A DNA stretch of 64,000 bases from Malacoraja senta. Lineage: Eukaryota. The notes below the pieces were generated by a model. It had not been told where the DNA came from and did no database searches. It saw only the letters and a program-made list of their open reading frames with translations. Below are positions 20,482 through 43,520 of this stretch, piece by piece. Numbering within the stretch: the stretch's first letter is position 1; each line of letters opens with the position of its first letter. Both the position numbers and the translations under genes were made by a program. Where the stretch lies: assembly GCA_038087875.1 (NCBI GenBank), contig CM075982.1, positions 59,334,001 to 59,398,000 of the forward strand. Direction: 5' to 3'.

Positions 20482-21837
20482 ACTTATAAACAACTATTGA
20501 TTTCATTTTAGTGAGTATTAAGGCAGTGAGGGAGTGATGTGCAAACAAAAATTCCTCGGGGAAGTCACAAGATAAAGATATCAAAAGACTCTACAAGACA
20601 CAGAAATTGTCCAAAATGGTACATAATACAGTTCTGCCAACTTCACTAAGTGCATGTGACAATTGGAAAATATAACACAAATTATTATTTTATGTTTAAA
20701 TCCATGTTTAAATGTATGCCACTTTATATCAATGCAAAAATCAGTATTGCATCGGCATTGAAACAATGGCAAATTTGGGCTACAAAAGTAAAAGTGAAGT
20801 GGTAAAAATAGTTAAAAAGGCAAGAGATATTACACTGAAAACATCAGATTAGGAAGTAGTGCTGAGGCTCTTGATTTGAACTCCAGTTTAAAATGGTAAT
20901 CACATCCCTGAAATTATACTCCCTCATTCCAATTCTCTCAGAAGAGGAGGTTTCCCCTCAGCATCTAACATGTCAAAACCCTGCGAACCGTACATGTTTC
21001 AGTTAAAGTACCACTCACTCTCTTAACTCCATTGATGATAGCGAAACCTGCTCCGCATTTCTTCGTACAACAAACCCCTCATCCCCAGGCAGAACCTTGA
21101 GAACTTCTACCTAGTAACTGTTGCTCAAAATAAAAATGTGGGAATTAAAGAATTGGAACATGTAATGCTAACTCAGGAAGAATTGCCTGCCCACTAGTAT
21201 TTTTGGGGGGAGCATGCAAAGTATAAAGAATATCCAAGAAATCAAAAAATTGATAATAATTTTAGGATAGTGTCAGTGGATACAATTACCAGAATAAAAT
21301 GTCTTCAATGTGGATATTTCCTTGCAAAAGTTAATTTTTATTATAACCTTCTCCCGAATGTAATTCACCGATAAGAGCCCACAGCACAACCACACCATTT
21401 TCAGTCAAAATTATGAACCTGTTTTTGAGCCTGTTGATCTGGCAGTCAGCCTTGTAAACTTATTTCAAAACATCAGATTATAAAACCTCAATACCTTCCT
21501 AATTCTTCTTTTTGTTAACGTATTTAGCTATCTCCATCATCTAAAATCCATCAGCTGTTCCCAGGCAAGCTGCTGTTCCTGCAGTTTCTGCCCTTTTGAG
21601 AAATGACTGAGAACATGTCTAACAACTGGCCAGTTCATTACTATAAATCAGACAAAAAAGCAAGTTACAGAAAAGTCATCCTCAGATTCAAGAACTGCTG
21701 ACAATTGTCATAATTCAGTTGATTACTGCCTCCACATTGAATTTTACTTCGGAGTCACTTTAGTGATTCCGTGAAGAAGACCCGTCAGGGCGCATGCGTC
21801 ATTACGTCGGTCGCATTGGCACACGGACCAGCGGGAG

Positions 21838-22153
21838 GACAGAGCTCCTCCTGTGGTAAGTACTTTTAGAGTATTTTAAAGAGTTTTAAAGCTCCAGCTA
21901 AGTGAGAAACTTAGCTGGAGTAAAAAGTTCTTTACTGTGGTGCTGTGCTCTGTGTTTTGTCACAGGCAGCACCATGGTGAAGATGAGCAGGGGAACACAG
22001 GGCTCCTCCTGTAGTAAGTACTTTTAAAGTACTTTTATAGTTTTAAAGCTCCAGCTAAGTGGGGAACTTAGCTGGAGTGAAAAGTTCCTTTTTTGTGGTG
22101 CTCTGTTTTTTTAATTATTGCAGGCAGCACCATGATGAAGACGACCAGGGGGA
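21838..22153 (+). repeat. 158-bp tandem duplication in the DIRS-A leader (intron-like unit, hairpin and Kozak ATG)
   Basis: GTAAGT at 21856/22014, CAG| at 21965/22123, GCAGCACCATG in both units. Confidence 0.85.
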
Positions 22154-23330
22154 GGGCAGCCGCAGCTAAAGAATAGGAGAGCCGTGGGAATGCAGTCTGT
22201 GAGCGGCTGCCTCGTACCCCTGCACAGTCGCCGACGGGGTGCGGGGTGACTTCAGACTGAGTGCTAAAAAGCACCAAAGCCAACGCCAGTCGGGCGTAAG
22301 ACACGGGGAAGTCTGGAAGGCCCTCGGTCTCAACTGAGTCGGGCCACAATGACCCTGTACGGGGCTGGAGACGTTTTTAAATGGTTCTCCCAAATGGAGC
22401 ACCTCATCCAGAGGTTGCTTGCAGAAACGCACTCTCCGGGGAGGAGTTGTGTGGGCGGTAGGCTGCAGAAAGGCAACGCCGGCAGCACCTGGTAGAGTGC
22501 TGCTTAAAGCACCCTCATGCATGAGGTGAGTGCAGAGGGTCAGCTAAGGTCTGACCCCGACTCTGACGGAGACTTGGAAATTAGCGAAGAACGGCCGTTG
22601 TCAGAGGTCCATTCTCTGGCAGCACGATTCGCTGTCCAGTCAGAGTATGGATTGCCACTGGAACAAGAGCTGGCCTCCACGATAGGGTCAGCTCAGTTCT
22701 GACCCGACTCTGACGGAGACTTTGTTGAATAGCGATGAACGGCCGTTGTCAGAGGTCCATTCTCTGGCAGCACGATTCGCTGTCCCGTCAGAGTATGGAA
22801 TGCCACTGGGAAAGCGAAGACGGCCGTTGTCAGAGTTCCCATCTCTGGCAGTACGATTCGCTGTCCAGTCAGAGACTGGAATCACCAAGAGACGGGGTAA
22901 CTGCGAGTTGCTGAAGGTGCCAGCAGTGAACCGGGTGATATGGAGCCAGATGGGTGTGGGCGTGCAGTGCCCAGGAGATGAAGCTGCAGAGAATCCTGAA
23001 ATTACTTGGCTCAGGAATCACGGCGTTCGCGAGAACGGTGGATGGAGGGCATGTGTCGGAGACGCAGCAAGAGGTACTAGGGTTGCTTTATATCACCCAT
23101 TTTTGAGATAAATTGTCTCAGGGGAAGTGCCATTCGGCCCACCATTAATTCCAAGATTGCAGTATTTTTCCAGCCTAGCAACATACAGCCGGCAAACTTA
23201 CTCTTCGGAGAGGACCTCGCCAAGAGTGTCAAGGACATGGATGACGAGGCAAAGACGGTAGGCTTGATCAAGCCACCCGCATTCGGCAAGTTTCCAAAAA
23301 AGAAAGTACCCCGACAAACGAAGCGGGAAC
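22132..23330 (+). pseudogene. DIRS gag-like ORF1 remnant
   Basis: Position upstream of RT, Kozak ATG, GC-rich with many stops; LLKVPAVNRVIW and LLFGEDLAKSVKDM segments resemble DIRS ORF1. Confidence 0.55.
22536..22881 (+). repeat. ~148-bp tandem repeat (2 copies plus a partial) inside the gag region
   Basis: Repeated CGGCCGTTGTCAGAG...CGATTCGCTGTCC (ERPLSEVHSLAARFAV). Confidence 0.9.
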
Positions 23331-23399
23331 ATGGTCAAACATACACCAGGTACCAAGGAGGTAGGTGGGCCTGGTTCTCAGGTGCACATATCAAATGTG

Positions 23400-24610
23400 A
23401 CACAACTTAAATCTGGGGTACATTACATCTGTTTCTGGGATGAATGGAAGCAAATTACCTTCGCTCTGTTTATACAGAGTGTTATTCAAAGGCTTTGAAT
23501 GGATTTCAATCCAAATTGTGATTTGCACATTGAGCATTTTGTGATTTGCACATTGCACATTGAGAACTATTCAGTTTTCATTAACAGAACAGATGGATGT
23601 TCAGACTGCGCTTGCAAGCTTATGTGATAAAGGTGTAATGGTAAAGTTGGTTCACCAATCCCATCAATTTGTGTCTAATATTTTCCCAGGCCAAAAAAGG
23701 ATGGGGGATATAGTATAGACATTGTAAGATGGAATTGTCACTGCCAAGAAACTGGGTCAAGAGGATGCTATATGGTGACTATAGACCTTAAAGATGCACA
23801 TTACTCAAAGTCTGTTTATTTGCAGGATAAGGATATTTGAAATTCACCTGGATGGATCAACTATGGCAACAAAATTGTTAAAACCTATATTAGGCATGCG
23901 GAGAGGCCAGGGTCAGGTGCTCTTGGCTAATCTTGATGATATCTTGATTACAGGGGTATCCAAGACAACAGCTGAAGTAACAGGTGATATTTGTTAAATC
24001 CAATTTTCAAAGATTGGGCATTAGTCATCCAGAGGAATCCAAATTAACACCTGACTATTTGGGTCACAATTGATTCAATTAAGTGACTCTGCCCAGGGAA
24101 AAAGGGTAGAGCTAATTGACAGATGTATCAAGCTAATTGAGGCATTAAAGATACATTGGGTCATTATAATAGACCTATGCAGTTATCAGTAAAGGCTATT
24201 TTCGGATTTGCAATGGTGGATTCACCATGTGTCCAGAAGTTATAGCAAGGTAATGCTTGACCAGCCTTCCATGATTTTGCAGATGAATGTCAGTGCACTC
24301 GGGTGAGGTTTCACGGATACGAGTTTCAGCTATGGAGGCAGATGGACTGAGCAAGAGGCATTGCTTCTGCAGACATGGGCAATTAAATATTAAGAGGCTT
24401 ATTGCTCTAACAAATGTAATCTGCATGTTCAGTTTCAGATTGACAATACTACACAAGTGGCATATATATTAATCACATTGGTGGAATCAAGTCGGCATTT
24501 TGTGACAGATTGGCTAATCAAATTTGGGCCTGGTGCATTGAAAAAGATATTTCAACTATTTATCTACCAGGTAGATTTTACATAGTAGCAGACGCCAAGT
24601 CACGAAGGTT
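23400..24610 (+). pseudogene. DIRS reverse transcriptase / RNase H remnant
   Basis: PKKDGG, MVTIDLKDAHY, LANLDDILI (YLDD-like); RNase H motifs QIDNTT..AYINHIGG and IWAWC...YLPG..IVADAKSR; frameshifted. Confidence 0.88.
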
Positions 24611-24624
24611 CCATGACAACATAG

Positions 24625-24930
24625 ATTGGATGTTGAACCAGGAGGTGTTCAATAATATAGTACTTATATATAAATGCCAGATATCGATTTGTTTTGCATC
24701 AAGGTTCAACCATCAGCAGCCTAAATAGGTTTCATGGGAACCAGACCAGGTGGCAGTTGCAATTGATACTTTGGCGTTAAATTGGGGTGGTATGTTTTAT
24801 ATATTTTCCTACCATTTTGCCTAATAGGTCGGAGTCTGGAAGAAATCAAGCAGGATGCCGCTTTGGGGGTGCTTGTAATACCTAATTGGCCGAATCAAGC
24901 ATGGTTCCCTTTGATGTTACAGTTAGGGAT
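24625..24930 (+). pseudogene. DIRS adenine-methyltransferase-like (MT) domain remnant
   Basis: WMLN..VF, DIDLF(A)SRFN, YIFLPFCLIGRSLEEIKQD..GVLVIPNWPNQAWFPLM. Confidence 0.75.
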
Positions 24931-25039
24931 CCAACCTCTTTTTGGTGGTTCCCAAGTGTAGGAATTGACTGGAGCATCCGCTAACACGGGAAAGTCATCT
25001 GTTATGTGATTGTATTGACTTGTTAATTTGCAGGTTTTA

Positions 25040-25950
25040 AGAAGGCCATACCTGGAGCAAGGACTGTCTGGGTGAACGGTGGGCATGCTCACTGTAGCCT
25101 GGAGAAAGAGTACTCAAAAGGGGTATATTACTGATGTAAAAAATGGGAGCAATATTGTGTACAAAATAATATTGACTATAGTACTGCAGGTATTGTGGAT
25201 ATTTTAGAGTTCCTGTTGACACTCTACGATGATGAGGGGCTCAGTTATAGCACCATTAATACAGCTTTAAGTGCTTTGTCATCGTATGGTTTTGATGGGG
25301 TCAGGAAAGATCCTATTGAGTTTCATCATATCATAGCTGGATTGATGAAAGGAATTTCAACTCTAAACCTCCTAAACCCAGGTATATGGCGATCTGGGAT
25401 GTAAGTGTGGTCCTCAAGATGCTTCGACAGTAGGTTCCTGTCATGTCTCTGAATTTGCCAAACTAATCATGAAAGTGGTTATGCTATTGGCATTGGTTCA
25501 GCATAGCAAGTGTAGATTTTGCAAAAACTGCTGCTAGACAAGATGGAAGTTGCTGAAGAGAATGTTATGTTATATAATTGCGTCCTGCTTAAGCAGAGCA
25601 GGCCAGGTGTCACAGGTTTGTTAAAATTGTGTTTCAGCATAAACTACTGATCCATGTTTATGTGTAATGGCACATTTATTTTCATTATATTGAAGCAAAA
25701 AAAATCTTAAGAAATGTGGAAACAGTTACATGAAGCCACACAGGAGAGTGTCAGTGCAGAGTATCTCAAGGTGGTTTAAAGCAAATGTTGATTAAGGCAG
25801 GTATTAACACTGAAGTGTATATATCCTTTTTCCACTAGTGCAGCAGCAACGTCGTCGGCTAGGGCGATGGATGTTCACAGCGGCCATATTTTTATAGGTG
25901 CCGGGTGGTCAAATGAATTATTTTTTAAAAATTTACCATCGGCCGTTCGC
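25040..25950 (+). pseudogene. DIRS tyrosine recombinase remnant
   Basis: WRKSTQKGY, LEFL...GLSYSTINTALSALS, PRY..WDVSVVL, SISRW, FSTS (HSTR decayed), AGWS...F.KIY. Confidence 0.88.
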
Positions 25951-26170
25951 CGATCGGAGAGAGGCTGTTTGCAAATTCAGTATTAAGTCCTGTTTAGGTT
26001 CCCCTGGGATACAGGGGTTACTGTTTGTTTTGATTATTCAAATCAATTGTTATTGCATGATATTAAAATTTCATGTTTAACGCATTATTGATTGTTTCTC
26101 ATCGAAAGTCAATCAATGCAGTAAGAAGCCGGGATTTGGATCTGCGGCAAAAAATCACAGAGCTTTGAAC

Positions 26171-26282
26171 TCTTCACAGAATCACTAAGGTGACTCCGAA
26201 GTAAAATAGTAAGATTAAACGAGAACTTACCAGTTTGAAGTTTGATCGTTATTTTATGAGGAGTTACGTTGGTGATTACGTG
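26171..26282 (+). repeat. DIRS-A internal complementary region (ICR)
   Basis: Reverse complement of the left end (21741-21777) fused at ATT to the reverse complement of the right end (26432-26509). Confidence 0.95.
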
Positions 26283-26929
26283 CCCGCCACGCCCAACCCT
26301 CTCTCATAAAAAAGGTCATATGGTAGTTCTCATGTTGCTCATCTTAATATGTTACTTCAAATATTGTGTTATCTGTGATTTCATACCGCTGCTTTGAAGA
26401 TTAACGCGCATGCGCCCTGACGGGTCTTCTTCACGTAATCACCAACGTAACTCCTCATAAAATAAAGATCAAGCTTCAAACTGGTAAGTTCTCGGTTAAT
26501 CTTACTATTCCACACTTCAAATCATGTTAGTCCTTCAGATAGTTACACTGAATGTTTTTAAATGATCAATTAGCAGTAAAAATTGCATTCCATTTAGTTT
26601 TCTATTAAATACTAGTCGCTGGTTAAATACTAGTCCATTATGAACACCCATTTTTGAGTTTAGTTTAGGTTATTGTCCAGGCATTGTAAAATAGACTCAT
26701 CAATTCAAGATTGAGAATTTATTTTACTTAGAAGGCTTTCTCATCACGGAATTAGTGTTGGCTGGAAAGGCTTCAATGCAATACACTTTGAAGTCTTTTA
26801 CTGAATAATAAACCAATTTTACCTTACACTGTTACAAGGACAGTGAGGTAGAATCATCACATTGTTGGACTGAATCTAACTAACTGTGTCTGATGATCCC
26901 ATTAGGAATTGCCAGCAATCAGCCATTCA

Positions 26930-27522
26930 AATGGAAGTCCTGGGCTGAAGCTCCCAGAGGGCTGAGGACTTCAGGGGGTATCCGCCAAGCTGGTTTCCTG
27001 CACATAGGACTTGGTGAACCGTGGCCTGAGAGGGGAAGCCTGCCGAGCCCTGCTTGTCCCTTGAAGACCGGAGACCAGGAGGATGGAGCCAGCGATGATG
27101 ATGGACACAACCAGCGAGGAGCAAGTCCAGTGGGAGAGGGAACCAGGTTCTGACCCACCTCCCCCTTGAGGTCAGCTACGGGAGGCGTCCCCAGGTAACA
27201 ATGATGGATGGGCGAGGAGAGGAACACGAGTTCACTGGTTGATCTACATGTCCAAGGAAGTTGATGGCTGGAGACCCGCAGCATCCTGGAGCTTGCTTGG
27301 AATGGGCAGTGCTCATAACAACTAGAGCGTGAGCTGGTCTCATTGTGCCAAAGTTGTTCCAAAACATGATGCCTGTTACATGTGCGATCAGTAGACTATT
27401 TCTGTACACCTTCTAATTGGGAATGTGCTGGGAATACGTCACTGGACTGTGTGTAAGAAAATAATTTCACTGTGTGTTTGCATTTCACACACGTGACAAT
27501 AAAAAACACAATTGAACCATTG
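26930..27522 (+). mobile_element. GC-rich non-autonomous element with Rex1-like 3' tail
   Basis: Ends AATTTCACTGTG...CACGTGACAATAAA...ATTGAACC; 5' boundary uncertain. Confidence 0.4.
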
Positions 27523-28132
27523 AGGCACTCACTGAGCGGCAGATGCTGCCACATCTGTCACTGCCCTCTTTCAATTAACTCAGCACCTAGTTCAACAGCA
27601 GAGCCCAATTTTGCTGGGCTTCCCCAGCACTACTGTGGGGAAATCCCCGTGTCTGATATGCATGACGTAGCATCCAAATCTCATCTATTTCAACTATGTT
27701 TCTATGTCCAACTGAATAAAAGGCAAATAGAGAGGTTAGTTTTTCCCATTATTTTGATTTTTAATGATATTTTGATTTTCAATGATATGCACATTTAAAC
27801 TATTTACTACAGTTCATGTTTTTTTTTAGTGTTAGATATATTAAAAACTGTTAAAATCACGTAGTTTTGACAGGAAATTAAGTTCTGCCCCAGCTTTACC
27901 TTTTGCCAATGTTGATCAAGACATTTGAGATATAGAGTCCTCGCACTCTGCAGTCCATAACTCAATTGTCATCTGGACCCAAGTGCTTAACTTGGATGTG
28001 CAGAGGACTAGAGAGACTGGTCTTCTGATCTAGCCTAGGTAACTAAGATCATGTAGGGACCACAGTGGTCAGTTCCAGGTAGCAAGATGTGCACTTGTTA
28101 GATGGACTGACAGGAAGTTATCATCTGTACAA

Positions 28133-28515
28133 TTTAATTCAATTCAATTCAATTCAATTCAATTCAACTTTAATGTCATTGCACAAATACTGAGTATGGG
28201 TACAACGAAATGCAGTTTTGCGTCAGTCCGTAGTAGTAGTGCAATATAGAAATTTAAAAAAAAAAAAGAGGATACAGAATAATCAAAAATACAGAATAAT
28301 TAACAATGGGGACGGAGGGAACGGAGGAATCTATCGGCGGGACTCCGAGTTCAGCAATGCGACGGTATAATTATAGAAGCTGTTCCTCATCCTACTGGTA
28401 CGAGACCCGAGGCTCCTGTACCGCCTCCCTGATGGGAGGAGGGCAAACAGTCCATGGTTGGGGTGGGAGGGGTCTTTGATGATCTTCCCAGCCCGTTTCA
28501 GACACCGTTTTCGGT
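28133..28515 (-). mobile_element. Rex1/Babar LINE 3' end with (AATTC)n tail
   Basis: LLPSGRRYRSL C-terminal motif on the minus strand. Confidence 0.85.
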
Positions 28516-30520
28516 GTCTGAAACTTGAATGCCAAAAATATTAGAGAACAGAACAATACGACTTGCTATTATTATATTAGAAATTCAGGTCAACAAATGT
28601 TCACAAAGTAAATAGGAACTAATGTCATATTTTAGCAAATTCATAATTTGTTTTATGCATCTGGTCCTTTAAAATTGATAAAAGTAGAAATGTATATAAA
28701 ATATGATACTTTAATTTACTGAAATGTGTGTGTTTTTGTGACCAGAAATCTATTACCAGCAGGGTTCCACTAGTCAATCGCAATCCCTTGCTTTTATTGC
28801 TTTTGTTAATGTCAGACTAAAATGTTGAGCACTGCAGCAAGGAATTTGCAGTTGATATAAAAAAATGCTTATTTGGTTAGAAGGGGAAAGGGGGATATTT
28901 TTGCTTCAGTAGAATCAAAATGGTTAGTGAAACAGAAATAAATGATATTTGCTTTATAAAAGTGAAATATTTCTGTATGCTTTTCTCTCATATTCAAAAG
29001 ATGGATTTTACAGAAGTTACCATTTTGCAAGAAGTTAACGAATAAAAAGGAAACCCCTGCAGATCTGAAAACTGAAACAGAAAGAGATCAAACAGAAGAC
29101 GTGCAGCAGAAACTACCCGAGCTATCTTCAATATTTTCTGTTTTTGTTCAGGTTAATCAATGCTTGGCAGCAACATCAGCAAAGACACAAACAGTTCTAG
29201 TGGGAACTTTGAAAATAAAGTTTTCTTTTTCAAGAATGTTTAATCTTCCAGATGGTCCTCAGTAGGTTTTGGAACATTACATACCTTAAATCAGAACCAA
29301 TCGTAATAATTCAATACATGATTATTCTCAAAAACACTCTAATATTACTCTTTGTTGTACATTACTTGTTTTACATTCAGTTGAATGACTGAACTTGAAC
29401 ATATTTAATCCAACTAAATTGTTCCCCAGACACTGACAATAGATTGTTGTTTACAACATAAACGTTATTTCTCTCCACAATGCTGTCTGATTTGTTTTCA
29501 GTGTCTTCTGGTTATATGCAAGTATTTGTGACTAATGGAATTCCTGGATTATTCAGGATTATAGTGACCGGCAAACTACTACAGGTAAGGGATTAGCACA
29601 AAGGAAAAACTTCAAACTGCACCTATACTTTGGATGTGAATTGAAGGACTGTATGGAACCCTGTCCATTACTAAGCTGCGAGTCATGTTGCCATGCACAG
29701 TCACCTCCTCAACTAATAACTCCAGAGAAAGTGTCTCTAATCCACAATTATCACCAGAGGGACGTGGAAATATTGTGACTGGCTCGACGTGGCCCATAGA
29801 CGGAATCCATGGCATTTTTTTTCAATATTGTGAGACACAATTTTTCCTTTAAAAGCCATGGTGTGTGATTAATGTGTTTAGATAGAAAATTGGGACAAAA
29901 ATATCATGTGTATTGATTGTAGATATTAAGAACAGTTAATTGATACGCATTAATATATACACTAGCCTTTTTAAGATTGTAAATGTTTGCAATTGTAAGA
30001 AATAAATAAAATCAGCAGAGTACACAATGTTGAAAAGGAAATCAATATTTGAAAATGCAGAACATTTAAATGTATTGATATTCTGTTATTCTTTAAGAGC
30101 ACAGTTAAAACTGCAATTAACTGAATAATTTGTTCTAATAACTTAATTAATTATTTGTTATTGCTCTAAATCTTCATTTACTATCAACACATGCCTGAAA
30201 AATAGTTGATTTTAGGCATACCAACTTTAACAAACTGTAGCAGATTTTTAGCAGGACAAGTCTGTAATATTTACAAGACATAGTGCCACATTATTTACTG
30301 ATCTCCACCTGGGAGACAAATGCCTTGGACCATTGACTGTAATGTGCAGTGGAGTGAATAAAACCAGTGACAGATGCTCTTGCATTTGTTTGGCATGAGT
30401 GATAGCAACCCAACCTCTGAGAGGGGAAAGAACTCAGGCCTTTTGATCAGTACCATCCAACCAACATACTTTGAGAGAAAATGAAAACGGAAGAGTGAAA
30501 TGTACAGACTTGCAGAGTAA

Positions 30521-31058
30521 TGCCCCTGTCCCACTTAGGAAACCTGAACGGAAACCTCTGGAGACTTTGCGCCCCACCCAAGGTTTCCGTGCGGTTCCCG
30601 GAGGTTTTTGTCAGTCTCCCTAATGGTCAAAAGTGGTTTCCGCTTCTTCTATGTTCCGGCGATTATTTCAAAAAATTCAAAACTGGCCGCGACTAAAAAT
30701 AGGATGCCGTTTTAAAAATCGGTAATTTTTTAGTCGAAGCCGGTTGCGATGCTAGTTGAAGGTGGTTGCCGGAGGTTGCAGGTAGACCTTCCACTATCTG
30801 CAACCTCCGGCAACCACCTTCAACTAGCATCACAACCGGCTTCGACTGAAAAATTACCGATTTTTAAAACAGCAAGCTATTTTTAGTCGCGGCCGGTTTT
30901 GAATTTTTTTAAATAATCGCCGAAACATAGAAGAAGCGGAAACCACTTTCGACCATTAGGGAGACTGACAAGAACCTCCGGGAACCGCACGGAAACCTTG
31001 GGTGGGGCGCAAAGTCTCCAGAGGTTTCTGTTCAGGTTTCCTAAGTGGGACAGGGGCA
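30521..31058. mobile_element. Foldback PIF/Harbinger-type MITE, 538-bp near-perfect palindrome
   Basis: ~265-bp arms around an 8-nt loop (30786-30793); TAA TSD on both sides; TIR TGCCCCTGTCCCACTTAGG. Confidence 0.95.
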
Positions 31059-31235
31059 TAAGAGTCATCGGTGATCTAGTTGGGACTGTTGATACTAGAC
31101 AAGGCACAACTGGTGATAAACAGACCACAGTGCTCTATGAGGAACTGAGAAACTATAATGTGCAATCTCACTTGTACTGAAAAAGATACGATCGTGGTCA
31201 CTACTGATTATTGTGTATTTAAAAACAAAAGTATT

Positions 31236-31505
31236 GGGCGGCACAATGATGCAGTGGTAGAGTTGCTGAGAGTACAGTGCCAGAGACCCGGGTTCAATCC
31301 TGACTAAGGGTGCTGCCTGCACGGAGTTAGTATGTTCTCCCTGTGATCACCTGAGTTTTCTTCGGGTTTTCTGGCTTCCTCCCACACACCAAAGATGTGC
31401 AGGTTTGTAGGTTAATTGTCCTCTGTAAATTGCCCCTAGTAGGCCAGAATTAGTGTTCGGATGATCGCTGTCGTCAAAGATTCGGTGGGCTGAAAGGCCT
31501 GTTTT
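31236..31505 (+). mobile_element. HE1/V-SINE-like SINE
   Basis: tRNA head and body. Confidence 0.85.
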
Positions 31506-31519
31506 CTGAATTATTGTGG

Positions 31520-32770
31520 AAGATGTTTTATCGTCCATTCTCACCTATTGTGGTCTAGGTGATGGGATCTTTCTCGTGGATCCTGTGGCAGAGTGGGGTG
31601 CTGACTTGTAGGTCCAGGAGTTTGGAGATGAGGTTAGGTGGGATTATGGTGTTGAAGGCAAAGCTAGTCAATAAATGATTAGTCTGGCATGGTTATCCTT
31701 TTCCCTTTACATGTTCCAGAGATGAATGTAGGGCCAGAGAGATGGTGATGGTAGTAAACTGTGGTGGCTCTATGGGAGGCTGGAGTTAATGTGCACCATC
31801 GCAAGTCTCATCAAGTACTTCAATGTGGTGTATGCCAGAGCTAATGGATAGCAGTCATTAAAGGCATGGTATTTTGCTATTCTTTGGCACTGCGATGATA
31901 GTGGTCTTCTTAACGTTAGTGGGAACCTTAGAATGAAGTAGCGATAGATTAAAGATAGGAATGAGTACAGATTAAAGATAGGAATGATCCTGCCAGCGGG
32001 TCTGCCAAGGGGCTGAGGACGAGGCTGACGAATCCATGCGGGCCAGTTGTTTTCCACGGATTCACACTCAGGGAAGCCAATCTGACATCTGCTACAGTGA
32101 CCATGGGTACAGGCACACCAGAGGCTGATGGGGCAGATGATGTCCTTCTACCGACCTCCTGATCAAAGCAGGCACACAATGCATTGAGTTTGTTGGGAAG
32201 GGATGTGTTGTAGCCAGCAATACTACCCAATGCAGACATTTTACTACACAAGCCTTGTCACAATCGATGGGTGCCCGTGTGGTTACCTCGAGATTCTATG
32301 TTGGTCTGGAATTCCCTCCGAGTGCTCTTGTTGGGATTGCAAAGGTCGTAAACAGATTTCTTGCACTACTGTGGATCATATGAATTTAACACTGTAGACT
32401 TGGACGTCATCAGGCAGTTGATCTCAGAGTTCATCCATGGTTTCCGGTTGGTGAACACTCGTATTGTCTTCCTCCACACACTCACTGATGAAGTCTGTGA
32501 TGGCAGTGGCATACACTCATTTAGATTCGCCGCAAGGTCTTTGAATTTAGACCAGTTCAGCAACTCAAAGTAGTCGCAAGGGATCTCATCTGTTTCCTCA
32601 GACCAGCAATGTACAACTTTCTGTACTGGATCCTCCCACTTCAGTTTCTGCTTGTAAGCAGAGAGTAGACGCACAGACAGGTGGTCAGATGTTCCAAAGT
32701 GCGGTCAAGGGATAGAGCGGCATCTTTGGTGGGTGTGTAGCAGTGGTCAAGGGTGTTTGGACCCGCTGAT
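31520..32770 (-). mobile_element. Degraded Rex1/Babar LINE (endonuclease end to RT)
   Basis: LLSAYKQKLK, NRKPWMNSEI, VNPWK..GP and FNDCYPLAL motifs. Confidence 0.85.
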
Positions 32771-33079
32771 AGTATGTTGGTAGAACATTAATCAGGAAGG
32801 ATCACAGCACGTTGGGATGTAGAACATGTAACACTGTGTTGAGAATGGAGAGAGAAGGAAAACAGGAACTACAAATAAGTTAGTGGGAAATCCACAAATA
32901 TGAAGACAATAAGAAGCTATTTAAAAACTGATATTGGTCCAGATTGTATTAGACTATGTTCACTATGTGATATCTGTACCTTCACACTGACCTACACCAA
33001 GTGCAATCGAAGTCCATGATTTAGTTGTCAAATAGTTTATCACCCACAATTTCTACTGAAACCATTATATTGTGCAGAG

Positions 33080-33555
33080 TCAAGATGTTTGTTTGAAAGG
33101 AAAGTTATGTTTAAGAGGTTAAGGAGCCTGTGAGTGTAAATAATAGAGCCGTTAAAGGAACACCATTAGATGAAGATATTTGAAATTTTCCCAAGTCATT
33201 CGACAAGATGTGCCAAAGAAAACTTCTCTAAAGGATAAAATGTGAAGCTATCAAATGAACAAAGATGAACACAAAGTGCTGAAGTAACTCAGTGAATCAG
33301 GCAGCATATCTGGAGAACATCAATAGGTGATGTTTTGGGTCCCGACCCTAAACATCACCGTTTCTAAACAAAGACATTGGTTTCTGGAAAGAAGAATAAA
33401 TGGGCCCTTTCCAAATAGCTGGTCACTAATGGAGAGAGGTCAGAGGAATCCATTGTGGGACCTCAGAGATTTGCTATTTATATTAATTATACATTTGAAG
33501 AGGTGATGGGTACACATTTTCTGATGAAACAAAGCTCGGTGGAAAAGCAAACTGT
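33080..33555 (+). mobile_element. Very old CR1 RT fragment interrupted by a PLE piece (33265-33360)
   Basis: Degenerate GKLCL, FDK..P and SDETKLGG motifs. Confidence 0.55.
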
Positions 33556-33692
33556 GTCATTTCCTTTTATTTAAAATGTAAATGGTTTTTTTTAAACATC
33601 CCACTTCCATCAGCAAGAATATTACTACTGGCAGGTACTGGTCCAGAGGTTCATTGAGAAATACTGCATTCCACATCTCTGAATCCTAATTT

Positions 33693-33990
33693 GTGGTGCA
33701 GCGGTAGAGTTGCTGCCTTACAGAACCAGAGACCCGGGTTTGATCCTGACTATGGGTGCAGTCGATATGGAATTTGTATATTCCCCCTGTGACTGCATGG
33801 GTTTTCCCCAGGTGCTCTGGTTTTCTCCCACTCACCAAAGATATAGAGGTTTGTAGTTTAATTGTCCGGTAAAATTGTAAATTGTCCCTAGTGTATAGGA
33901 TAGTGGCAGTGCATGGGGTGATTGCTGGTTGGCGCGGACTCATTGGGCTGAAGGGCCTGTATCCATGCTGTATCTTTAAAGTCTAAAGTC
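33693..33990 (+). mobile_element. HE1/V-SINE-like SINE
   Basis: Head, body and tail present. Confidence 0.9.
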
Positions 33991-34409
33991 CAAAACCCAT
34001 TAGAATTATCTGTAGTTCAATAATGCAATTATTCAATGTTAAAAACATTGGAAATATGCAAGAGGTCAAATAACACCCATGAAGAATAAAACTGGGTTAA
34101 CATTTCAAGTCATGACTTTTCACATAAAGTTTGAGAAAGGTTAATTGATCTGCAACGTTAACTCTCTACAACTGCTGCCTCTAGCAAATTATATCCAACA
34201 GTTTCTGTTTTGTTGTAATTGCAATAAGATTCACCATCCATATAAAACTGCCAAAGGCTATTCATGCTTACAATTTTTATGTGAAAGAATTCTTAGCTGA
34301 CATTTAAGTTATGAAGTATAACATTAATCAAAACACCCATAAAGTTATTGACTAAATTCCATTAGGATGATATATTAAATTCCTGAATATATCTCCATTC
34401 AACTGTATC

Positions 34410-34578
34410 ATAGAAACATAGAAAAATAGGTGCAGGAGTAGGCCATTCGGCCCTTCGAGCCAGCACCACCACTCAACATAATCATGGCTGCTCATCTAAA
34501 ATCAGTACCCTTTCCTGCTTTTTCCCCATATCCCTTGATTCCTTTAGCCCTAAGAGCTAAATCTAACTCTCTCTTGAA
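34410..34578 (-). mobile_element. CR1 3' end
   Basis: ATAGAAAC tail and 3'UTR. Confidence 0.88.
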
Positions 34579-34919
34579 ATCATTTATCTAACTCCCCAAA
34601 TCACTGAATACCTTTTACCTGTATGCATAACATGTACTTTGCACGTTATTGCTGATATTAGCAAAATATAAGTTGCATGAGCAGGATGGAATATCAGATA
34701 TTAAGCATTCATGTGAAATTCAATGTAAATTATTTCAGTTAATTTATCATTTTAATTGATTCAAGGCATGCCAGACAATAATGATAATTTTCTAATGCAC
34801 TGTTACTAAATGAATCCCAGATGGACAATAACAAAAGAAAAGAGATTTAAGTACAAATTTAAATATTTATCTATCTCAAAATTTAATTGTATCTCTTTAC
34901 ACACTGAGCTCCTTGCCAG

Positions 34920-36160
34920 TCTGATTCAGCAGAGTTAACATGGATTTATGAAAAGAAAATCATGTTTGACTAATCTGCTGCAGTTCTTTGAGGATGTGGC
35001 TAGTTGAATAAACAAGAGGAAACCAGTGGATACAGAATAGCCGTATTTTCATAAGGCTTTTGAAAGGATCCTGCACATGATGTTAGTCGACAAGGTTTGA
35101 ACATGTGGGACTGGAAGTAATATAATGACATAGATTGAGAATGGGTTATAACAGAGTGTGAGTATAAACAGAATCTGTCACAACCTGACAAGCTGGACCA
35201 AGTGGGGAACAACAGGAATTGGTGGTTAGGCCCCAGATATTCCCAATCTGGTGATACAGTGGTGCAGGGGTAGAGTTGCTGCCTCACAGGGCCAAAAACC
35301 CAGGTTGGATCCTGACTATGGGTGTTGTCAGTGCGAAGTTTGTAGGTTCTCCCTGTGACCGCACGGGTTCTCCCCCTGGTGCTCCGGCTTCCTCCTACAT
35401 TCTAAAGACGTGCAGGCTTGTAGGTTAATTGGCCTCTGTAAATTGTTCCTAATGTGTAGGATAGAACTAGTTTACAGGTGATTGTTGATCGACATGGACT
35501 CGGTGGGCCAAAGGGCCTGTTTCGACGCTGTAACTTTAAAACCAAAATTAAAAACTAAAACAAATCTATGTCAAACAATTGGCCAAATTCCTATTTCCAA
35601 GGTTGCTCATGATACAAAACTAAATGGGATTGTTACTAAAGAGGAAGATATAAAGTGATGGCAATCATTTGCAAAGGCGATTCGTATTGTGGTCTTTATT
35701 ACAAGAGAATTTATGTAAAGTCGTCTTACTGCAATCATAAAGGGCTTTGAAGAGACCATTGACCTGGCATATTATGCAGAGATGACTAAATGAGGAGAAA
35801 TTGAGGAGAGAAATTGAGGAGAGAGAGAAGAAAATTCATTGAAACATATAAAACTCTTGGGGGGCAAGAAAGGTGCTGATATATGAGGTGATAGCTGGTT
35901 GGTGCAGACTTGGTGGGCGAAAGGGCCCATTTCCATGCTGTATCTCTAAAGTCAAAAGTCTCTGCAGTCTAGATCCGGGGAGAATATTTCCTCTGGCTAA
36001 GAAGTCTAGATCCAGGAGTCACAAATTAAGATTAAATGCAAGACCATTTAGGACCGAGAAGTATAGTAGGTTCTTCACATATAATTGGTGTATCTTTGAA
36101 AGTCTCAGACATTGAGTTTATTCAAAATAGAGATCAATAGATTTCTGGTCATCAAGGGAT
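34920..36160 (+). mobile_element. Old CR1 RT fragment with nested SINEs
   Basis: QHGFMKRKSCLTNLLQFFEDV; SINE insertions at 35250-35560 and 35885-35960. Confidence 0.7.
35250..35560 (+). mobile_element. HE1/V-SINE-like SINE
   Basis: Head, body and tail present. Confidence 0.9.
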
Positions 36161-37461
36161 AGTGAAGGATTTGAAAACATAATTACTTCAATAAAAAGTA
36201 ATGTAAATAATCTTTAACTAATAATGATTAGCTTGAAGTTAGAATTAAAAACAAACCAACTTATTAGTCGATTTCTGTCTTCTTTTCAGATTTTAAAGCT
36301 CTGAATGTTCTATCAACTGCCTACAATTTGTGTTATATTCTGCACTGTGCAATGAGGATTGGTTGAAGTGCTCTGTTTCATGTTTTGCATCAGTGCCTTT
36401 TATAATCAACTGTGATTTGCAGCACCCAAGTGAATGGTGAAACTGAGGTTAACTCATTTTCTGAGCCATCTATCCAATTTGAAACTACTTCTTATGCTAC
36501 GTTTAATCGGTCTCTGATTTTGTTCATTTCCACAAGTGAGCTTGAAATAACTTGAAACCTTGTCTGTGCATCAGACCATTCTCTGGATAAACCTCAACTG
36601 TTCATCCCTATTGCCAAGTTCATTATTTGAATTCAGAAATTAATTGGATTTTGCTATAAAACACACAAAACCATGAAATCTCTCCCTCTCCAGATAAATA
36701 GCAAAAAACTCTTCATATTAGGAGATGGTCAGTGGAGTAACTTACATGATTCCTTTAGCGTTGTTTGGTGTTGGGGAAGCATCACGTGCTCGGAATTTAA
36801 TTCAACAGCACTAGCCTATGGACTAACACCAGTAAGTCAAGCTTAATTATCCAATTTGTACCTTTGACCTGCATTGACCAGGTTTAATAATTTTGTTATT
36901 TTTATCCTTTAGAAATCTTTATAGGTATTCTGCTCTTCATCCAGTTTTGATTAGTTGTATGCTTACGTTGCTAATGTGCTGTCAACATGAAAGTTAATGT
37001 GAATTGTAGCCTTCCCCTGAAATTACAACAGTGGTTACAAGTCAATAATATTATAATTTGCTCTCATATGTTTTGTGGATATTCCAAGTTGATGAAAAGT
37101 TATACAAAAATAAGAGTTCTTATATTTTTTAATCCGGAAGGGGTTATTATTACAATCCTGCATTTCAAATAAAATGGAACCTTTATGACCACTATTATTT
37201 TATTGAGTACCAACTGCCCAGTGACCAGGGCAAATAGCAACTATCCATAAAACAAAGATATTTATTTATCAGCTGGCACATCCTCGGGGCATCTCCAATC
37301 ATTTTGTATTAATGGAAATTCATTCTCTTACATTGTCATGTAATGAAATGCTGTAATGAAATTCATACATGCAACAGAAAGTTTAATGAATAGATAATCT
37401 ATTGTGGCAAAGTTTGAGAATAAAATTTAGCAATCCATCAGATGACTTCACCTGCTGTTTA

Positions 37462-37775
37462 GGTTAGTTTAGTTTAGTTCAGTTTAGTTTATAGATACAG
37501 CGTGGAAACAGGCCCTTCGGCCCATTGACTTTTCGCTGCCCAGCAATCCCTGCACACTAACATTATCCTAAGCACACTAGGGAAAATGTACAATTTTACC
37601 CAGCCAATTAACCTACAAACCTGTATGTCTTTAGAGTGTTGGAGGTAACCGGAGTACCCGGAGAAAACCCACGCAGGTCATGGGGAGAACGTACAAACTC
37701 CATACAGACAGCACACATTGTCAGGATTGAACCCAGGTCTCTGGCGCTGTAAGGCAGCAACTCTACCACGGTACC
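37462..37775 (-). mobile_element. HE1/V-SINE-like SINE
   Basis: Head, body and (TTTAG)n tail. Confidence 0.9.
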
Positions 37776-37873
37776 ATTCTTTCTATTGTGATCATTTTAA
37801 TTTATAATCCATTTTACAATATACAGTAAGAGGCTACTGCTTAACATTCCAACTGAAAGACGTCACCTCGAAC

Positions 37874-38570
37874 TGTAGAATCGTTCCCTACTTCACCCTT
37901 GCACTGAACTATTATACCTAGGTGAGGGTGTAATTATGCTCCTAGAGCTAACCCCCTCGGTAAAACACCGAGTCAAGCACTGGACCACTAAATCTTTTTA
38001 TTTTATGAAACAATGAAGAATTCCCTATACAATACCCAGCCACACCGCAGGATCGATCCTTGTCTCTGCATGTCCAAGCCCTTCAGCCTCGTGCAAGCAG
38101 ATACTTCCAAAAGGTTACCCAGCCCCAAGCACTCATCCAGAAGATCGATAATGAACCTCGTGGGGGTTACCTTTTATAGGTAATCGAACCCTGTGAGGCT
38201 GATCTACATGGGGGTGGTATCCCTGCAAACCAATCACAGATATCGATTACATTAAAGTGTTATTGACAGTCCCCCAACCCAATTACAAAGCATCCCATTA
38301 CAATGTTTCTACAGAAGCTTCTGGAAAGAAGTCAGTTGACCCAAGTAAGGCAACATTCTCCTGGGGAGTATAAACAATTCAAACAAGGCGTCACACTTCA
38401 GCCAATCCTCAAACAGTAACATAAACACCTTGCAACATTATTAACAGTATTTGCAATTCTTCTGCAGCGAGCCTATCATGCTAAGGCAGTCCAACACCTT
38501 TGGGCTTCTCTGCAAAGTACTCATACATTTTAACAATTGTGACGACATCGGGACCACACCTTATCTGACA
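37874..38570 (-). mobile_element. Solo-LTR-like element, relative of 9209-9983
   Basis: TG...CA ends; shares ATCGATATCTGT.ATTGG, ACCACCCCCATGT, CCTATAAAAG, TCGATCTTCTGG, AATAAA and TTACACCCTC in the same order. Confidence 0.65.
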
Positions 38571-39202
38571 GTTCAATCTAGGACCTAGACTTCCTGGCAC
38601 CAATTTGCAGCTCTCAGCTTTGCACAGAAATTGACCAAACAGGTTTTGCAGATGCCCTGATACTCCATTTTATATGTCTCTATTTTAGCCCATATTAGCA
38701 AGGGCATACGTGTTAAGCCAAGGGTGATTATTGAGAGGTTGATAAATGAAGGCTTTGCACTCAATGTTACAAGCCTGTGGGAAAATATATCTGCATCTTT
38801 CCCAGCCAACATTTTTAGTACTATTAATCAGGATTTGATATACAGGTCCTACCTTTTAGTGTTCTTTGCAAGGACATTCCATGAAGTAAGCTGACATAGA
38901 TCAACGGATGAGTGCAGAGCTCAATCACTGTGAAAATGACGATTTCAACTCTTCAATTATCACAGTCTACACATGGGCAACCAATACAATATTGTCATAC
39001 ATTCTTCTTTCCTATTTAGAGCTATTTCTTGATGTCTTGTTGGTGATTACGTGAAGAAGACCCGTCAGGGCGCATGCGCGGCAATCTTCAAAGCAGCGGT
39101 ATGAAATTACAGACAACACAATATTTGAAGTAACATATTAAGATGAGCAACATGAGAACTACCATATGACCTTTTTTATGAGAGAGGGTTGGGCATGGCG
39201 GG

Positions 39203-39313
39203 CACATAATCACCAACGTAACTCCTCATAAAATAAAGATCAAACTTCAAACTGGTAAGTTCTCGTTTAATCTTACTATTTTACCTCGGAGTCACGTGAG
39301 TGACTACGTGAAG
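39203..39313 (-). repeat. DIRS-B ICR
   Basis: Circle-junction copy ...CTTACTATTTTACCTCGGAGTCACGTGAGTGACTACGTGAAG. Confidence 0.93.
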
Positions 39314-41514
39314 GGTTCAAAGCTCTGTGATTTTATGCCGCTGATCCAAATCCCGGCCTCACTGCATTGATTGACTTTCGATGAGAAATAATCAATAATG
39401 TGTTAAACATGAAATGTTAATATCATGCAGTAACAATTGATTTGAATAATCAAAACAAACAGTAACCCATCTATCCCAGGGGAAACTAAACAGGACTTAA
39501 TACTGAATTTGCAAACAGCCTCTCTCCGATCGGCCGATGGTAAATTAAAAAAAAAAAAATCATTTGACCACCCGGCACCTATAAAAATATGGCCGCTGTG
39601 AACATCCATCGCCCTAGCCGACGACGTTGCTGCTGCACTAGGTGAAAAAGGATATATACACTTCAGTGTTAATACCTGCCTTAATCAACATTTGCTTTAA
39701 ACCACCTTGAGATAGTCTGCACTGACACTCTCCTGTGTGGCTTCATGTAACTGATAAACAATGCTGTTTCCACATTTCTTAAGGTCTTTATAGCTTCAAT
39801 ATAATGAAAATAAATGTGCCATTACTCATAAACATGGATCAGTAGGTTATGCTGAAACACAATTTTAACGAACCTGTGACATCTGCCCTGCTCTGCTTAA
39901 GCATGACGCAATTATATAACATAACATTCTCTTCAGCAAATTCCATCTTGTCTAGCAGAAGTTTTTGCAAAATCTGCACTTGCTATGCTGAACCAATGCC
40001 AAGAGCATAACCACTTTCATGATTAGTTTGGCAAATTCAGAGACATGACATGAACCTACTGTCGAAGCATCTTGAGGACCTCACTTACATCCCAGATCGC
40101 CATATACCTGGGTTTAGGAGGTTTAGAGTTGAAATTCCTTTCATCAATCCAGCTATGATATGATGAAACTCAATAGGATCTTTCCTGACCCCATCAAAAC
40201 CATACGATGACAAAGCACTTAAAGCTGTATTAATGGTGCTATAACTGAGCCCCTCATCATCGTAGAGTGTCAACAGGAACTCTAAAAAATCCACAATAAC
40301 TGCAGTACTATAGTCAATATTATTTTGTACACAATATTGCTCCCATTTTTTACATCAGTAATATACCCCTTTTGAGTACTCTTTCTCCAGGCTACAAGCA
40401 CCCCCAAAGCGGCATCCTGCTTGATTTCTTGCAGACTCCGACCTATTAGGCAAAATGGTATCAATTGCAACTGCCACCTGGTCTGGTTCCCATGAAACCT
40501 ATTTAGGCTGCTGGTGGTTGAACCTTGATGCAAAACAAATCGATATCTGGCATTCATATACAAGTACTATATTATTGAACACCTCCTGGTTCAACATCCA
40601 ATCTATGTTGTCATGGAACTTTCGTGACTTGGCGTCTGCTACTATGCAGAATCTACCTGGTAGATAAATAGCTGAAATATATTTTTCAATGCACCAGGCC
40701 CAAATTTGATTAGCCAATCTGTCACAAAATTCCGACTGCCTTCCACCGATGTGATTAATATATATGCCACTTGCATAGTATTGTCAATCTGAAACTGAAC
40801 ATGCAGATTACATTTGTTAGAGCAATAAGCCTTGTCCATAAAAACCTCTTAATAGTTAATTGCAGAACTATTAAGTCTGCAGAAGCGATGCTGCTTGCTC
40901 AGGCCATCTGCCTCCACAGCTGAAACCAGTATCCGTGACACCCCAACCGAGTGCACTGACATTCATCTGCAAAATCATGGAAGGCTGGTCAAGCATTACC
41001 TTGCTATAACTCCTGGACACATGGTGAATCCACCATTGCAAATCAGAATAGCCTTTACTGATAACTGCATAGGTCTATTATAATGACCTGAATGTATCCT
41101 TAATGCCTCAATTAGCTTGATACAGCTGTCAATTAGCTCTACCCTTTTTTCCCTGGGCAGAATCACTTAATTGAATCAATTGTGACCCAAATAGTCAGGT
41201 GTTAATTTGGATTTCTCTGGATGGATCAGCAATCAGCGACTGAGCAGGAATTTTAGAGGCAAACGCCCACTGTTTTCCCTCGTGCATTCAGCATGGGATC
41301 CCGGCACATAGCCATGTTTGGATTCCTGTTTGGAGTTAATCCATACTAACCTTAGACACTCTTTTAGAGTTGGACTTATCGAAGCTGAAGCAGGTATCAC
41401 CAACCATCTCCTCAATTTGCTTGTACATGCCTCTGTACCAAGCATGATGTTCGACACCATTCCCCACAATCTTATCACATATGTGTGTGGCTCCATCTTC
41501 ATCCGCTATACATC

Positions 41515-41912
41515 CACGTGGGAGGACTTATGCTACCTGCAACAGGAGCTGCCCCAGGCCTGTGTGCATCTATTTTAGCACCATCTCGACCACTACGGAG
41601 AACCGAGTGGGAGTAATGGCAACCCTGCAAACAGGTGTTGCTTCAGGCCCATGTGCATACTCCTGTAGCACTCTCTCGACCACGCTGCCATTTGAGTGGG
41701 AGAAATTTTGGCAACCCTTTACTAGGCGTCACCTCAGGCATGTGTGCATATATTTTAGCACTATCTCGACCACTGTGGTGCACCAAGTGGGAGGAATGGC
41801 AACCCTGCAAACAGGTGTTGCTTCAGGCACATGTGCATCCTCCTGTTGCACTCTCTTGACCACTCCGACCCTTGAGTGGGAGGAATTTTGCAACCCTTTA
41901 CTAGGTGTTGCT
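41515..41912. repeat. ~90-bp subunit tandem array with a 180-bp higher-order period
   Basis: 41555-41734 aligns with 41735-41912; subunit motifs TGTGCAT, TCGACCAC, GTGGGAG and GCAACCCT. Confidence 0.9.
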
Positions 41913-42909
41913 GCCTGACATGCCTTACGATGGAGCGTTGTTGGATTGCAACGAGACGCAATGTTGTCTGACATTGATACCCCTGGCTTGGCATTCACTC
42001 TGAGTTGGGGTTATCAGGTTGCTGCCTACAGCAGCCGCCAGGACTAGCCATGCAAATCGATACTCTGTTGGTATCCTCCTTCCCCAAACAGGCTGCACAT
42101 GCTAGCGACTCCAAATCGTGCTCCTTTCCGATGCCAACGCCGTCTATAGGGAAGAATTGGAGTGCCTCTGACCCCCGTACATCAGACATAGTGGGAAATG
42201 CTGGAACAAAACTTAACAGTTATTTGTCATAGGCAAAGACATTTATGTGAATAAAGACGCCCATCCCAGTTAAACCTGGGATTTATTTACTTTTAATATG
42301 AGTAATCCGGCGTCTTGGGGAAGAAACCGTGCACAGTTCCTTTTAATGAGCAGAATTACTATGACGCCACCTGGTGTAACTCCCACAGGTGACTGTTAAT
42401 ACAGCTCAACAAGGCTTCCCATTTCCTTAATTGAGTAAATGATAATCATCTGTCTCGGTATAATAGTCACAATGTGACCAAGTGGTAACTATAATGTCTA
42501 CCCTTTTGAACGCTTCCCAAAATTGCGTTCGTCCTTAATTTGGAGGGCATGCATGAATTGTAAATTCTCCTTGAAGGCCAGCTTGGCCTAGACCTGAAAC
42601 CTCCACAGAATTAGCAGAAAATGCTACTGCCATAGACACATAAGGGTGATAAACCACTAATCTCACTTCCTGAGTTGGGGTTGGGGTCAGCCACACACTG
42701 ACCCCTTGTACTCCTCTCCACTGAGGGAATTGGTAAGCAGCCCTGAGACCTTACTCCTCTCCACTGAGGACATACATATATAACAGATGGGACCCTCCTG
42801 GCCAGGCTCCACATAGTTCAAACTCATATGGGCTGCCAAAGTCGGGGTCCTTGCCTCAATGAGCCGGGTAGTAACCCAACGACCACGCTCAGTCGGCACC
42901 CCAAATACC

Positions 42910-43265
42910 CTCGGGAGTCGCTGACCTTACTGTCAGCGACTCTAACAAGAAGTCCAACGGTAACCGGCTCCTCACTTTACTGCAGACCGTAGCCGGTGTT
43001 CCCGCGGTCCCTATTTAAAACATATCTCTGGAGTCGCTGACCTGCCTGTCAGCGACTCGAAATAACAAGCCCAACAGCCACCTCTATCGTGACCGTAGCT
43101 TGCTTAACCCGCGGTCTACAAAAACCCGCGGCCCGAATTAAACCTCGGGAGTCGCAGACCGTTCTGTCCGCGACTCAACCAGCAAAACCCACCGGCCGTC
43201 TGCTACCGCACTCCCGCGGTCCGAAGCCGGCATCCCCGCGGTCAACATTTTCCCCCGCGGTCCAC
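42910..43265. repeat. Three ~117-bp units, each with an 11-bp-stem hairpin GAGTCGCTGAC-N6-GTCAGCGACTC
   Basis: Hairpins at 42915-42942, 43031-43058 and 43149-43176; six CCCGCGG motifs. Confidence 0.9.
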
Positions 43266-43520
43266 CGGGTTATGCTCAATTTGATGTCCAGCAGGAACCT
43301 GCGAGAAGAGATTCCTGCAACGGACAACCTGAAAAGTAAGTTTAAACTTACCTGTAGGATTTTTCAAACTTACCGCTGGAGAACTTTGTTCCTCCCAGCC
43401 TGTCTGCGCCAATGCGACCGACGTAATGACGCGCATGCGCCCTGACGGGTCTTCTTCACGTAGTCACTCACGCGACTCCGAAGTAAAATAATTAATAGGC
43501 TTTCATTGAGATATAAAATG

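Follow-up and report, generated by a model that had tools for sequence, protein, structure and literature searches.

Left termini track their own ICRs in two DIRS1-like retrotransposon copies of the skate Malacoraja senta

Two DIRS1-like copies in the window

The window analysed here is a 64,000-nucleotide stretch of Malacoraja senta DNA (assembly GCA_038087875.1, contig CM075982.1, positions 59,334,001 to 59,398,000 of the forward strand). It contains two DIRS copies, DIRS-A (21741-26509, + strand) and DIRS-B (43489-39039, - strand), which lie 12.5 kb apart in inverted orientation and are referred to below as A and B. When the ends of A are read against its internal complementary region (ICR) a textbook DIRS1-like layout emerges, and the ICR of B (39203-39314) is laid out as it is in A. 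The parts of the two copies are as follows.

21741..21777, + strand: DIRS-A left terminus (L), with an ATT start; complementary to ICR part L'
21771..21798, + strand: DIRS-A conserved core of the inverted terminal repeat (ITR), 28 nt, without a difference across the four ITR copies of A and B
26171..26207, + strand: DIRS-A ICR left part (L'), reverse complement of L
26205..26282, + strand: DIRS-A ICR right part (R'), reverse complement of the right end (78 nt, 96%); its overlap with L' is the 3-nt junction
26407..26465, + strand: DIRS-A right ITR, by inverted-repeat match
26466..26509, + strand: DIRS-A right extension, 44 nt, with ATT at its end
43453..43489, - strand: DIRS-B left terminus (L), complementary to 39278-39314
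39278..39314, - strand: DIRS-B ICR left part (L'), complement of DIRS-B L
39203..39280, - strand: DIRS-B ICR right part (R'), counterpart of R' in A
39039..39078, - strand: DIRS-B right ITR, broken off within the ITR

The ICR of A (26171-26282) corresponds, in reverse complement, to a sequence made up of the element's right end (26432-26509) followed by its left end (21741-21777). In particular, 26171-26207 is the reverse complement of 21741-21777 and 26205-26282 is the reverse complement of 26432-26509, the two parts sharing AAT/ATT. Because this overlap is three bases long, the circle junction would carry a single ATT; ATT/AAT is the commonest junction among DIRS elements (Piednoel et al. 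2011, PMC3266345). Inverted terminal repeats are present both in A (21751-21798 against 26407-26454; 48 nt, 92%) and in B (43427-43476 against 39034-39083). Outside the ITR core of A lie the divergent part of the ITR and the right extension, the latter being complementary to the ICR alone. As inserted, A both starts and finishes with ATT and lacks a target duplication, its two flanks having nothing else in common. (Note that the right end of B is incomplete, its final ~67 nt not being found anywhere in the window.)

Coding remnants and family membership

Both copies are coding-dead and riddled with stops. Their recognizable remnants are listed here.

23631..23955, + strand: DIRS-A reverse transcriptase remnant, broken; tblastn with P0004
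24202..24943, + strand: DIRS-A RNase H / MT-like remnant, with frameshifts and a stop common to B; tblastn E 1.7e-41
25135..25983, + strand: DIRS-A tyrosine recombinase remnant, weak; Phage_int_SAM_4 E 0.0016
40460..41071, - strand: DIRS-B RNase H / MT-like remnant; tblastn with P0004

A 72-aa piece of A (24510-24728) has 618 relatives at E <= 0.001, and one of these, P0004, a 696-aa RT-RH-MT protein of DIRS type with Pfam RVT_1, served as the tblastn query. Residues 96-227 and 357-613 of P0004 could be placed on A and residues 349-553 on B, all of them interrupted by stops or frameshifts; no reverse transcriptase was detected in B by tblastn with this protein. The recombinase region of A matches an N-terminal SAM-like domain only (E 0.0016, 19 bits, against a Pfam cut-off of 27), and there was no Pfam match to the catalytic part of a tyrosine recombinase.

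A and B belong to a single DIRS1-like retrotransposon family, which is very abundant in the skate. The abundance follows from two same-species runs, in which ~28,000 and ~19,000 contigs were placed on A; the unique flanks match at 100%. Since the stop that follows NHQQPK occurs in both A and B, as does a degenerate form of the RNase H motif, their common ancestor was already dead and would have been moved by enzymes acting in trans.

A and B as separate insertions

Homology between A and B is confined to two parts, 21741-21861 (85% identity) and 24026-26446 (96%), and the 2.1 kb of 5' interior between them are unrelated in the two copies. The near-identity of the 3' halves that had been reported in the first-pass annotation is thus borne out, with 87 mismatches over 2148 aligned columns. 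Moreover, when the copies were compared with the family majority, A and B had two minority variants in common (25133 and 25541) among the variants listed, which argues that their 3' halves are close kin.

No homology was found between the flanks of A and those of B. The flanks being unrelated, an origin of B by segmental duplication of A is rejected, and the check on this point that the annotation had proposed therefore goes against duplication. Together with the differing 5' interiors and the truncation of B, this supports the view that the two copies were inserted separately and did not arise by passive duplication. The annotation had gone further and given each copy a replication cycle of its own; separate insertion is the part that stands, and for the rest the data mean only that A and B come from lineages whose L' versions already differed. 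(The spectrum of mutations is uninformative as a discriminator, the background differences between A and B already comprising 41 transitions and 46 transversions.)

Left ends track their own ICRs

The annotation had quoted a 26-nt left end and a matching 26-nt ICR sequence for each copy, and all four were found where it had placed them. In A, 21751-21776 (+) and 26172-26197 (-) differ by 2 mismatches; in B, 43454-43479 (-) and 39288-39313 (+) differ by 1. Shuffled sequence gave no such 26-mer matches. The full complementarity between terminus and ICR extends over 37 nt (21741-21777 against 26171-26207 in A, and 43489-43453 against 39278-39314 in B), and over these 37 nt the four sequences (A-L, A-ICR, B-L and B-ICR) vary in 8 columns, which behave as follows.

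21761, 21767 and 21769: fully linked, with A-L the same as A-ICR, B-L the same as B-ICR, and A different from B
21759: half-linked; the elements differ, with a later change in one A sequence
21748, 21757, 21770 and 21777: private, each to one sequence

The claim that diagnostic bases are common to the terminus and ICR within an element and not between elements is accordingly correct for three positions and half correct for a fourth. Four of the five sites that vary in L fall within the seven that vary in the ICR (P = 0.0025), and the joint chance of this together with matching bases is ~3e-4. When the right ITR is taken as the reference state, two derived, linked changes fall to each lineage. 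A-L differs from the right ITR at 4 positions, 3 of them common to A-ICR, and B-L differs at 5 positions, 4 of them common to B-ICR. These findings, which for the skate are drawn from the two copies in the window, support the conclusion that the ICR of the same copy, and not the right ITR, is what each left end tracks, in keeping with the prediction of the established ICR model. L and L' now differ over the 37 nt at 2 positions in A and 3 in B, numbers that fit the 1.5 mismatches expected had the two started out the same in each new insertion and diverged afterwards at the rate seen between A and B.

Of note, the covariation is symmetric, being compatible with the ICR as template or as copy and with selection for pairing. 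The annotation's reading of it as a footprint of ICR-templated end synthesis is therefore upheld in so far as the left ends follow their own ICR; the direction of copying is not proved by a symmetric pattern, and the excess divergence of L' described below is left unexplained by it. (A circle junction joining 26509 to 21741 was not present among the joints listed, which were those of contigs.)

Own-ICR matching in DIRS elements from metagenomes

Using an alignment of 13 DIRS pol proteins, we took 80 DIRS loci from metagenome contigs. Both L and ICR could be read in 48 elements (within the series L004-L080) at 39 distinct insertion sites, with ~18 terminus types among them. At 31 of the 39 sites L matches its own ICR at 100% (mean over all 39, 99.2%) as against a mean of ~73% for L and the ICRs of other elements, and in 38 of the 39 the element's own ICR was the best or tied best match to its L. 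Differences in L and ICR between families are nearly all linked, whereas those within families are mostly private. Changes confined to the terminus exceed those confined to the ICR in the metagenome contigs by 13 to 1, an excess that may be an effect of assembly.

The skate termini can be aligned with those from metagenomes, having the same ATTYTAC start and the same end motif, and two of the fully linked skate positions (21767 and 21769) belong to a short motif whose form switches from one DIRS family to another. In some metagenome families, one and the same L/L' occurs beside different ITR cores or in different R' contexts. Neither the skate ICR nor the skate ITR core had an exact match when viral and metagenome contigs were scanned for these patterns. 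Skate L and L' are predicted to fold (z about -2.7 to -3.7), and both lineage-specific stem changes improve the pairing. A conserved left-terminus hairpin as a general feature was nevertheless rejected, since 18 other DIRS families are without the fold (z about 0).

Excess divergence at L'

Between A and B, L' has changes at 7 of its 37 sites, as against 3.8% in the rest of the common 3' half (P = 6e-4), and is thus ~5 times more divergent than its surroundings; the adjoining R' part differs at 2 of 78. One-way templating alone does not predict such an island of divergence. Recombination of modules, a locally fast-evolving segment or two-way correction could each produce it, and the metagenome set contained no pairs close enough to show whether L' is a generally fast-evolving block. 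Given that the divergence of L' matches that of the 5' end, information might also pass from L to the ICR, through two-way correction of an L/L' duplex, or L and L' might form a separately exchangeable module; we regard either as doubtful. If true, such two-way flow or exchange would amend the one-way textbook model of DIRS elements, and the excess divergence of L' is the sole hint in these data at something undescribed.

Explanations for the covariation

We consider it probable that A and B are separately inserted, trans-mobilised DIRS1-like copies whose L was rebuilt from the ICR in each round. This explanation builds on what is documented above, namely the anatomy of the copies, the linkage within them, the independence of their insertion and the generality of the match in other DIRS elements; we infer the copying direction, from ICR to terminus. 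The dead A and B copies would have been mobilised in trans. The outer portion of the left inverted repeat (its "divergent" part) would not be passed on directly; instead, in each round of retrotransposition single-stranded cDNA would anneal to the ICR and the left end would be copied from it. A fresh insertion would then have an L that is the complement of L', and changes fixed in L' would recur in L. The A and B lineages would have had differing versions of L', each with two derived changes relative to the right-ITR copy, so that each copy came to have its own matched L/L' pair. The 2-3 mismatches that remain between L and L' in each copy would represent ordinary decay after insertion.

Alternatively, A and B might have arisen by recombination, their 5' portions deriving from two different subfamilies and their 3' halves from a single one, with L' either rewritten from the terminus, counter to the textbook direction, or made up of old alleles that recombination on both sides had moved. 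The identity profile favours this: the leader adjoining L is 85% identical, over the next 2.1 kb there is no relation, and identity in the 3' half reaches 96%, and L' diverges like the 5' end and unlike its own neighbourhood. The variants at 25133 and 25541, common to A and B against the family majority among the variants listed, mark the 3' halves as close kin, and there are the metagenome families that combine the same L/L' with different ITR cores or R' contexts. However, the excess of linked changes is modest, with four in 37 nt against 1.4 expected (P = 0.05, counting all background differences), and because the motif that contains the variable sites switches form across DIRS families in general, a locally fast-evolving segment would fit as well. 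We also know of no mechanism for copying from terminus to ICR, and on balance we think a mosaic origin or a two-way flow of information unlikely.

It is also conceivable that L is inherited through the RNA, without templating, and that only lineages keeping L and L' complementary go on transposing. Covariation alone cannot separate such compensatory selection from templating, and the ICR is indeed needed to complete the cycle (PMC7192593). Yet identity of 100% over 35-48 nt in 31 of 39 elements is more exact than annealing requires, the linked changes include loop-like positions, no intermediates were seen, and DIRS-1 transcripts and cDNA are without the left-end sequence (PMC7192593). We therefore regard selection by itself as a decidedly improbable cause. 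Least credible is that B arose from A by inverted segmental duplication, or that L and L' were homogenised after insertion by gene conversion at the DNA level. Although the proximity of the copies (12.5 kb), their inverted orientation and their 96% identical 3' halves might suggest duplication, the lack of flank homology, the unrelated 2.1 kb of 5' sequence and the truncated right end of B speak against it, and segmental duplication is contradicted outright by the unrelated flanks; a 37-nt inverted repeat 4.4 kb apart would be a very poor substrate for gene conversion.

Taken with the rebuilding of L from the ICR as the preferred reading, the window offers an illustration, at the level of single copies, of how ends may be rebuilt from an internal template, on dead, trans-mobilised vertebrate copies. 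To our knowledge no retrotransposons other than DIRS elements rebuild their ends in this way. The observations leave the DIRS model unchanged and are useful for annotating the abundant skate family and for dating its copies, the latter because L/L' mismatches act as an internal clock in the manner of LTR-LTR divergence.

Comparison with known DIRS systems

Dictyostelium DIRS-1 is the element of the Cappello model, which Malicki et al. 2020 (PMC7192593) put to the test.

The complementarity of the DIRS-1 ICR covers the outermost 33 nt at the left terminus and 55 nt at the right one (PMC7192593), an arrangement like that in the skate. Malicki et al. 2020 found the ICR to be essential for DIRS-1 retrotransposition, with the reverse transcriptase acting in trans (PMC7192593); as proposed for A and B, the ICR is required to finish retrotransposition, and the proteins act in trans such that defective copies can move (PMC7192593). 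DIRS-1 differs in its ~330-bp terminal repeats and its other gene order, and it has been studied experimentally, whereas the skate copies are known from sequence alone.

The 39 metagenome insertions resemble the skate copies in a terminus that begins ATTYTAC and ends in a CAYG/CGTG-AGA motif, in an L that equals their own ICR and in a conserved ICR flank (TTYAAAG). They differ in having other hosts and a mostly intact pol and, unlike A and B, no pair among them joins near-identical 3' halves with different L'.

There is also a close likeness to DIRS1-like elements with short ITRs, such as the mollusc AcaDIRS1/2 type (PMC3266345, Table 3), whose dimensions come near to those of the skate copies and in which there is likewise ATT at both ends with an AAT circular junction, a divergent ITR part of ~30-37 nt that tracks the ICR, a conserved core of ~30 nt, a right extension of ~45-55 nt, ICR parts of ~37 and 78 nt, RT-RH-MT followed by YR (putative in the skate), and no target duplication. 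The skate differs from this type in its host, a cartilaginous fish, in that both copies are dead, and in the 2.1 kb of unrelated sequence that in B replace gag/RT; the conserved ITRs of the published vertebrate elements in the same table are far longer (100-146 nt) than those of the skate. Piednoel et al. 2011 (PMC3266345) had already described a divergent ITR part under constraint from its ICR, and in the light of this precedent and that of Malicki et al. the finding is a correct reading of a known feature. The match between left end and ICR is a hallmark of DIRS elements and not a new footprint, seen here in a new host family and at a finer, sub-family scale than usual.

Private changes in the left terminus

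In the metagenome loci (DIRS elements from contigs of other hosts), where an element's left terminus and its internal complementary region (ICR) disagreed, the private change was in the terminus 13 times versus 1 (P = 0.002; loci L006, L026, L035, L038, L052 and L055 against L013). This excess of private changes could mean that the terminus is the error-prone copy, or it could have arisen because assemblers collapsed the interior to a consensus.

Predicted folding of the ICR and the left terminus

As single-stranded DNA, the entire ICR is predicted to form a long imperfect hairpin in both DIRS-A (26165-26290; -18.4 kcal/mol, z -4.0) and DIRS-B (39195-39320; -21.4 kcal/mol, z -5.5), the two DIRS1-like copies in the window. 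The hairpin arises because the outer inverted terminal repeat (ITR) is present in both L' and R', the ICR parts complementary to the left and right ends, and because the right extension, which lies outside the right ITR, is itself palindromic. A hairpin is also predicted in the left terminus of DIRS-A (21747-21776) and of DIRS-B (43454-43483), with z about -3, and its stem is strengthened by each of the lineage-specific changes at 21767 (DIRS-B) and 21769 (DIRS-A). A comparable left-terminus fold was absent from 18 other DIRS families.

Related copies in the same species

In both runs of the same skate species, the summed depth of contigs matching DIRS-A was 5-10x higher over the ICR and right ITR (26123-26454) than over the rest of the element, which suggests that there are either many truncated copies or several subfamilies with a common ICR/right-ITR module. 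At 21795, DIRS-B and most of these contigs have two extra bases (GC); thus, the left ITR of DIRS-A carries a private 2-nt deletion. In run X2, one low-depth contig links the left terminus, represented by its first 19 nt, to the final ~63 nt of the right end, with 3 intervening letters (21759 to 26447); this contig may derive from a miniature copy or a rearranged one.

Interiors and surroundings of the two elements

The 5' 2.1 kb of DIRS-B (41224-43367) showed no relatedness to that of DIRS-A (21862-24025), and a reverse transcriptase match was absent from DIRS-B. Both interiors contain repeats:

21833-22151, DIRS-A (+), 158-nt leader duplication
22582-22890, DIRS-A (+), ~80-nt repeats
41552-41899, DIRS-B (-), tandem repeats of a 180-nt unit
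42909-43192, DIRS-B (-), tandem repeats of a hairpin-bearing ~117-nt unit

Between the elements lies a 266-nt near-perfect palindrome (30520-31059; 95% complementary, 8-nt spacer). A SINE-like repeat also occurs several times in the window, with copies in both orientations:

31247-31438, SINE-like repeat
33693-33990, SINE-like repeat
35253-35550, SINE-like repeat
37488-37783, SINE-like repeat

Metagenome contig L015 (1553-10418) likewise carries two DIRS elements, arranged tail to tail, and their relative orientation is identical to that of DIRS-A and DIRS-B.
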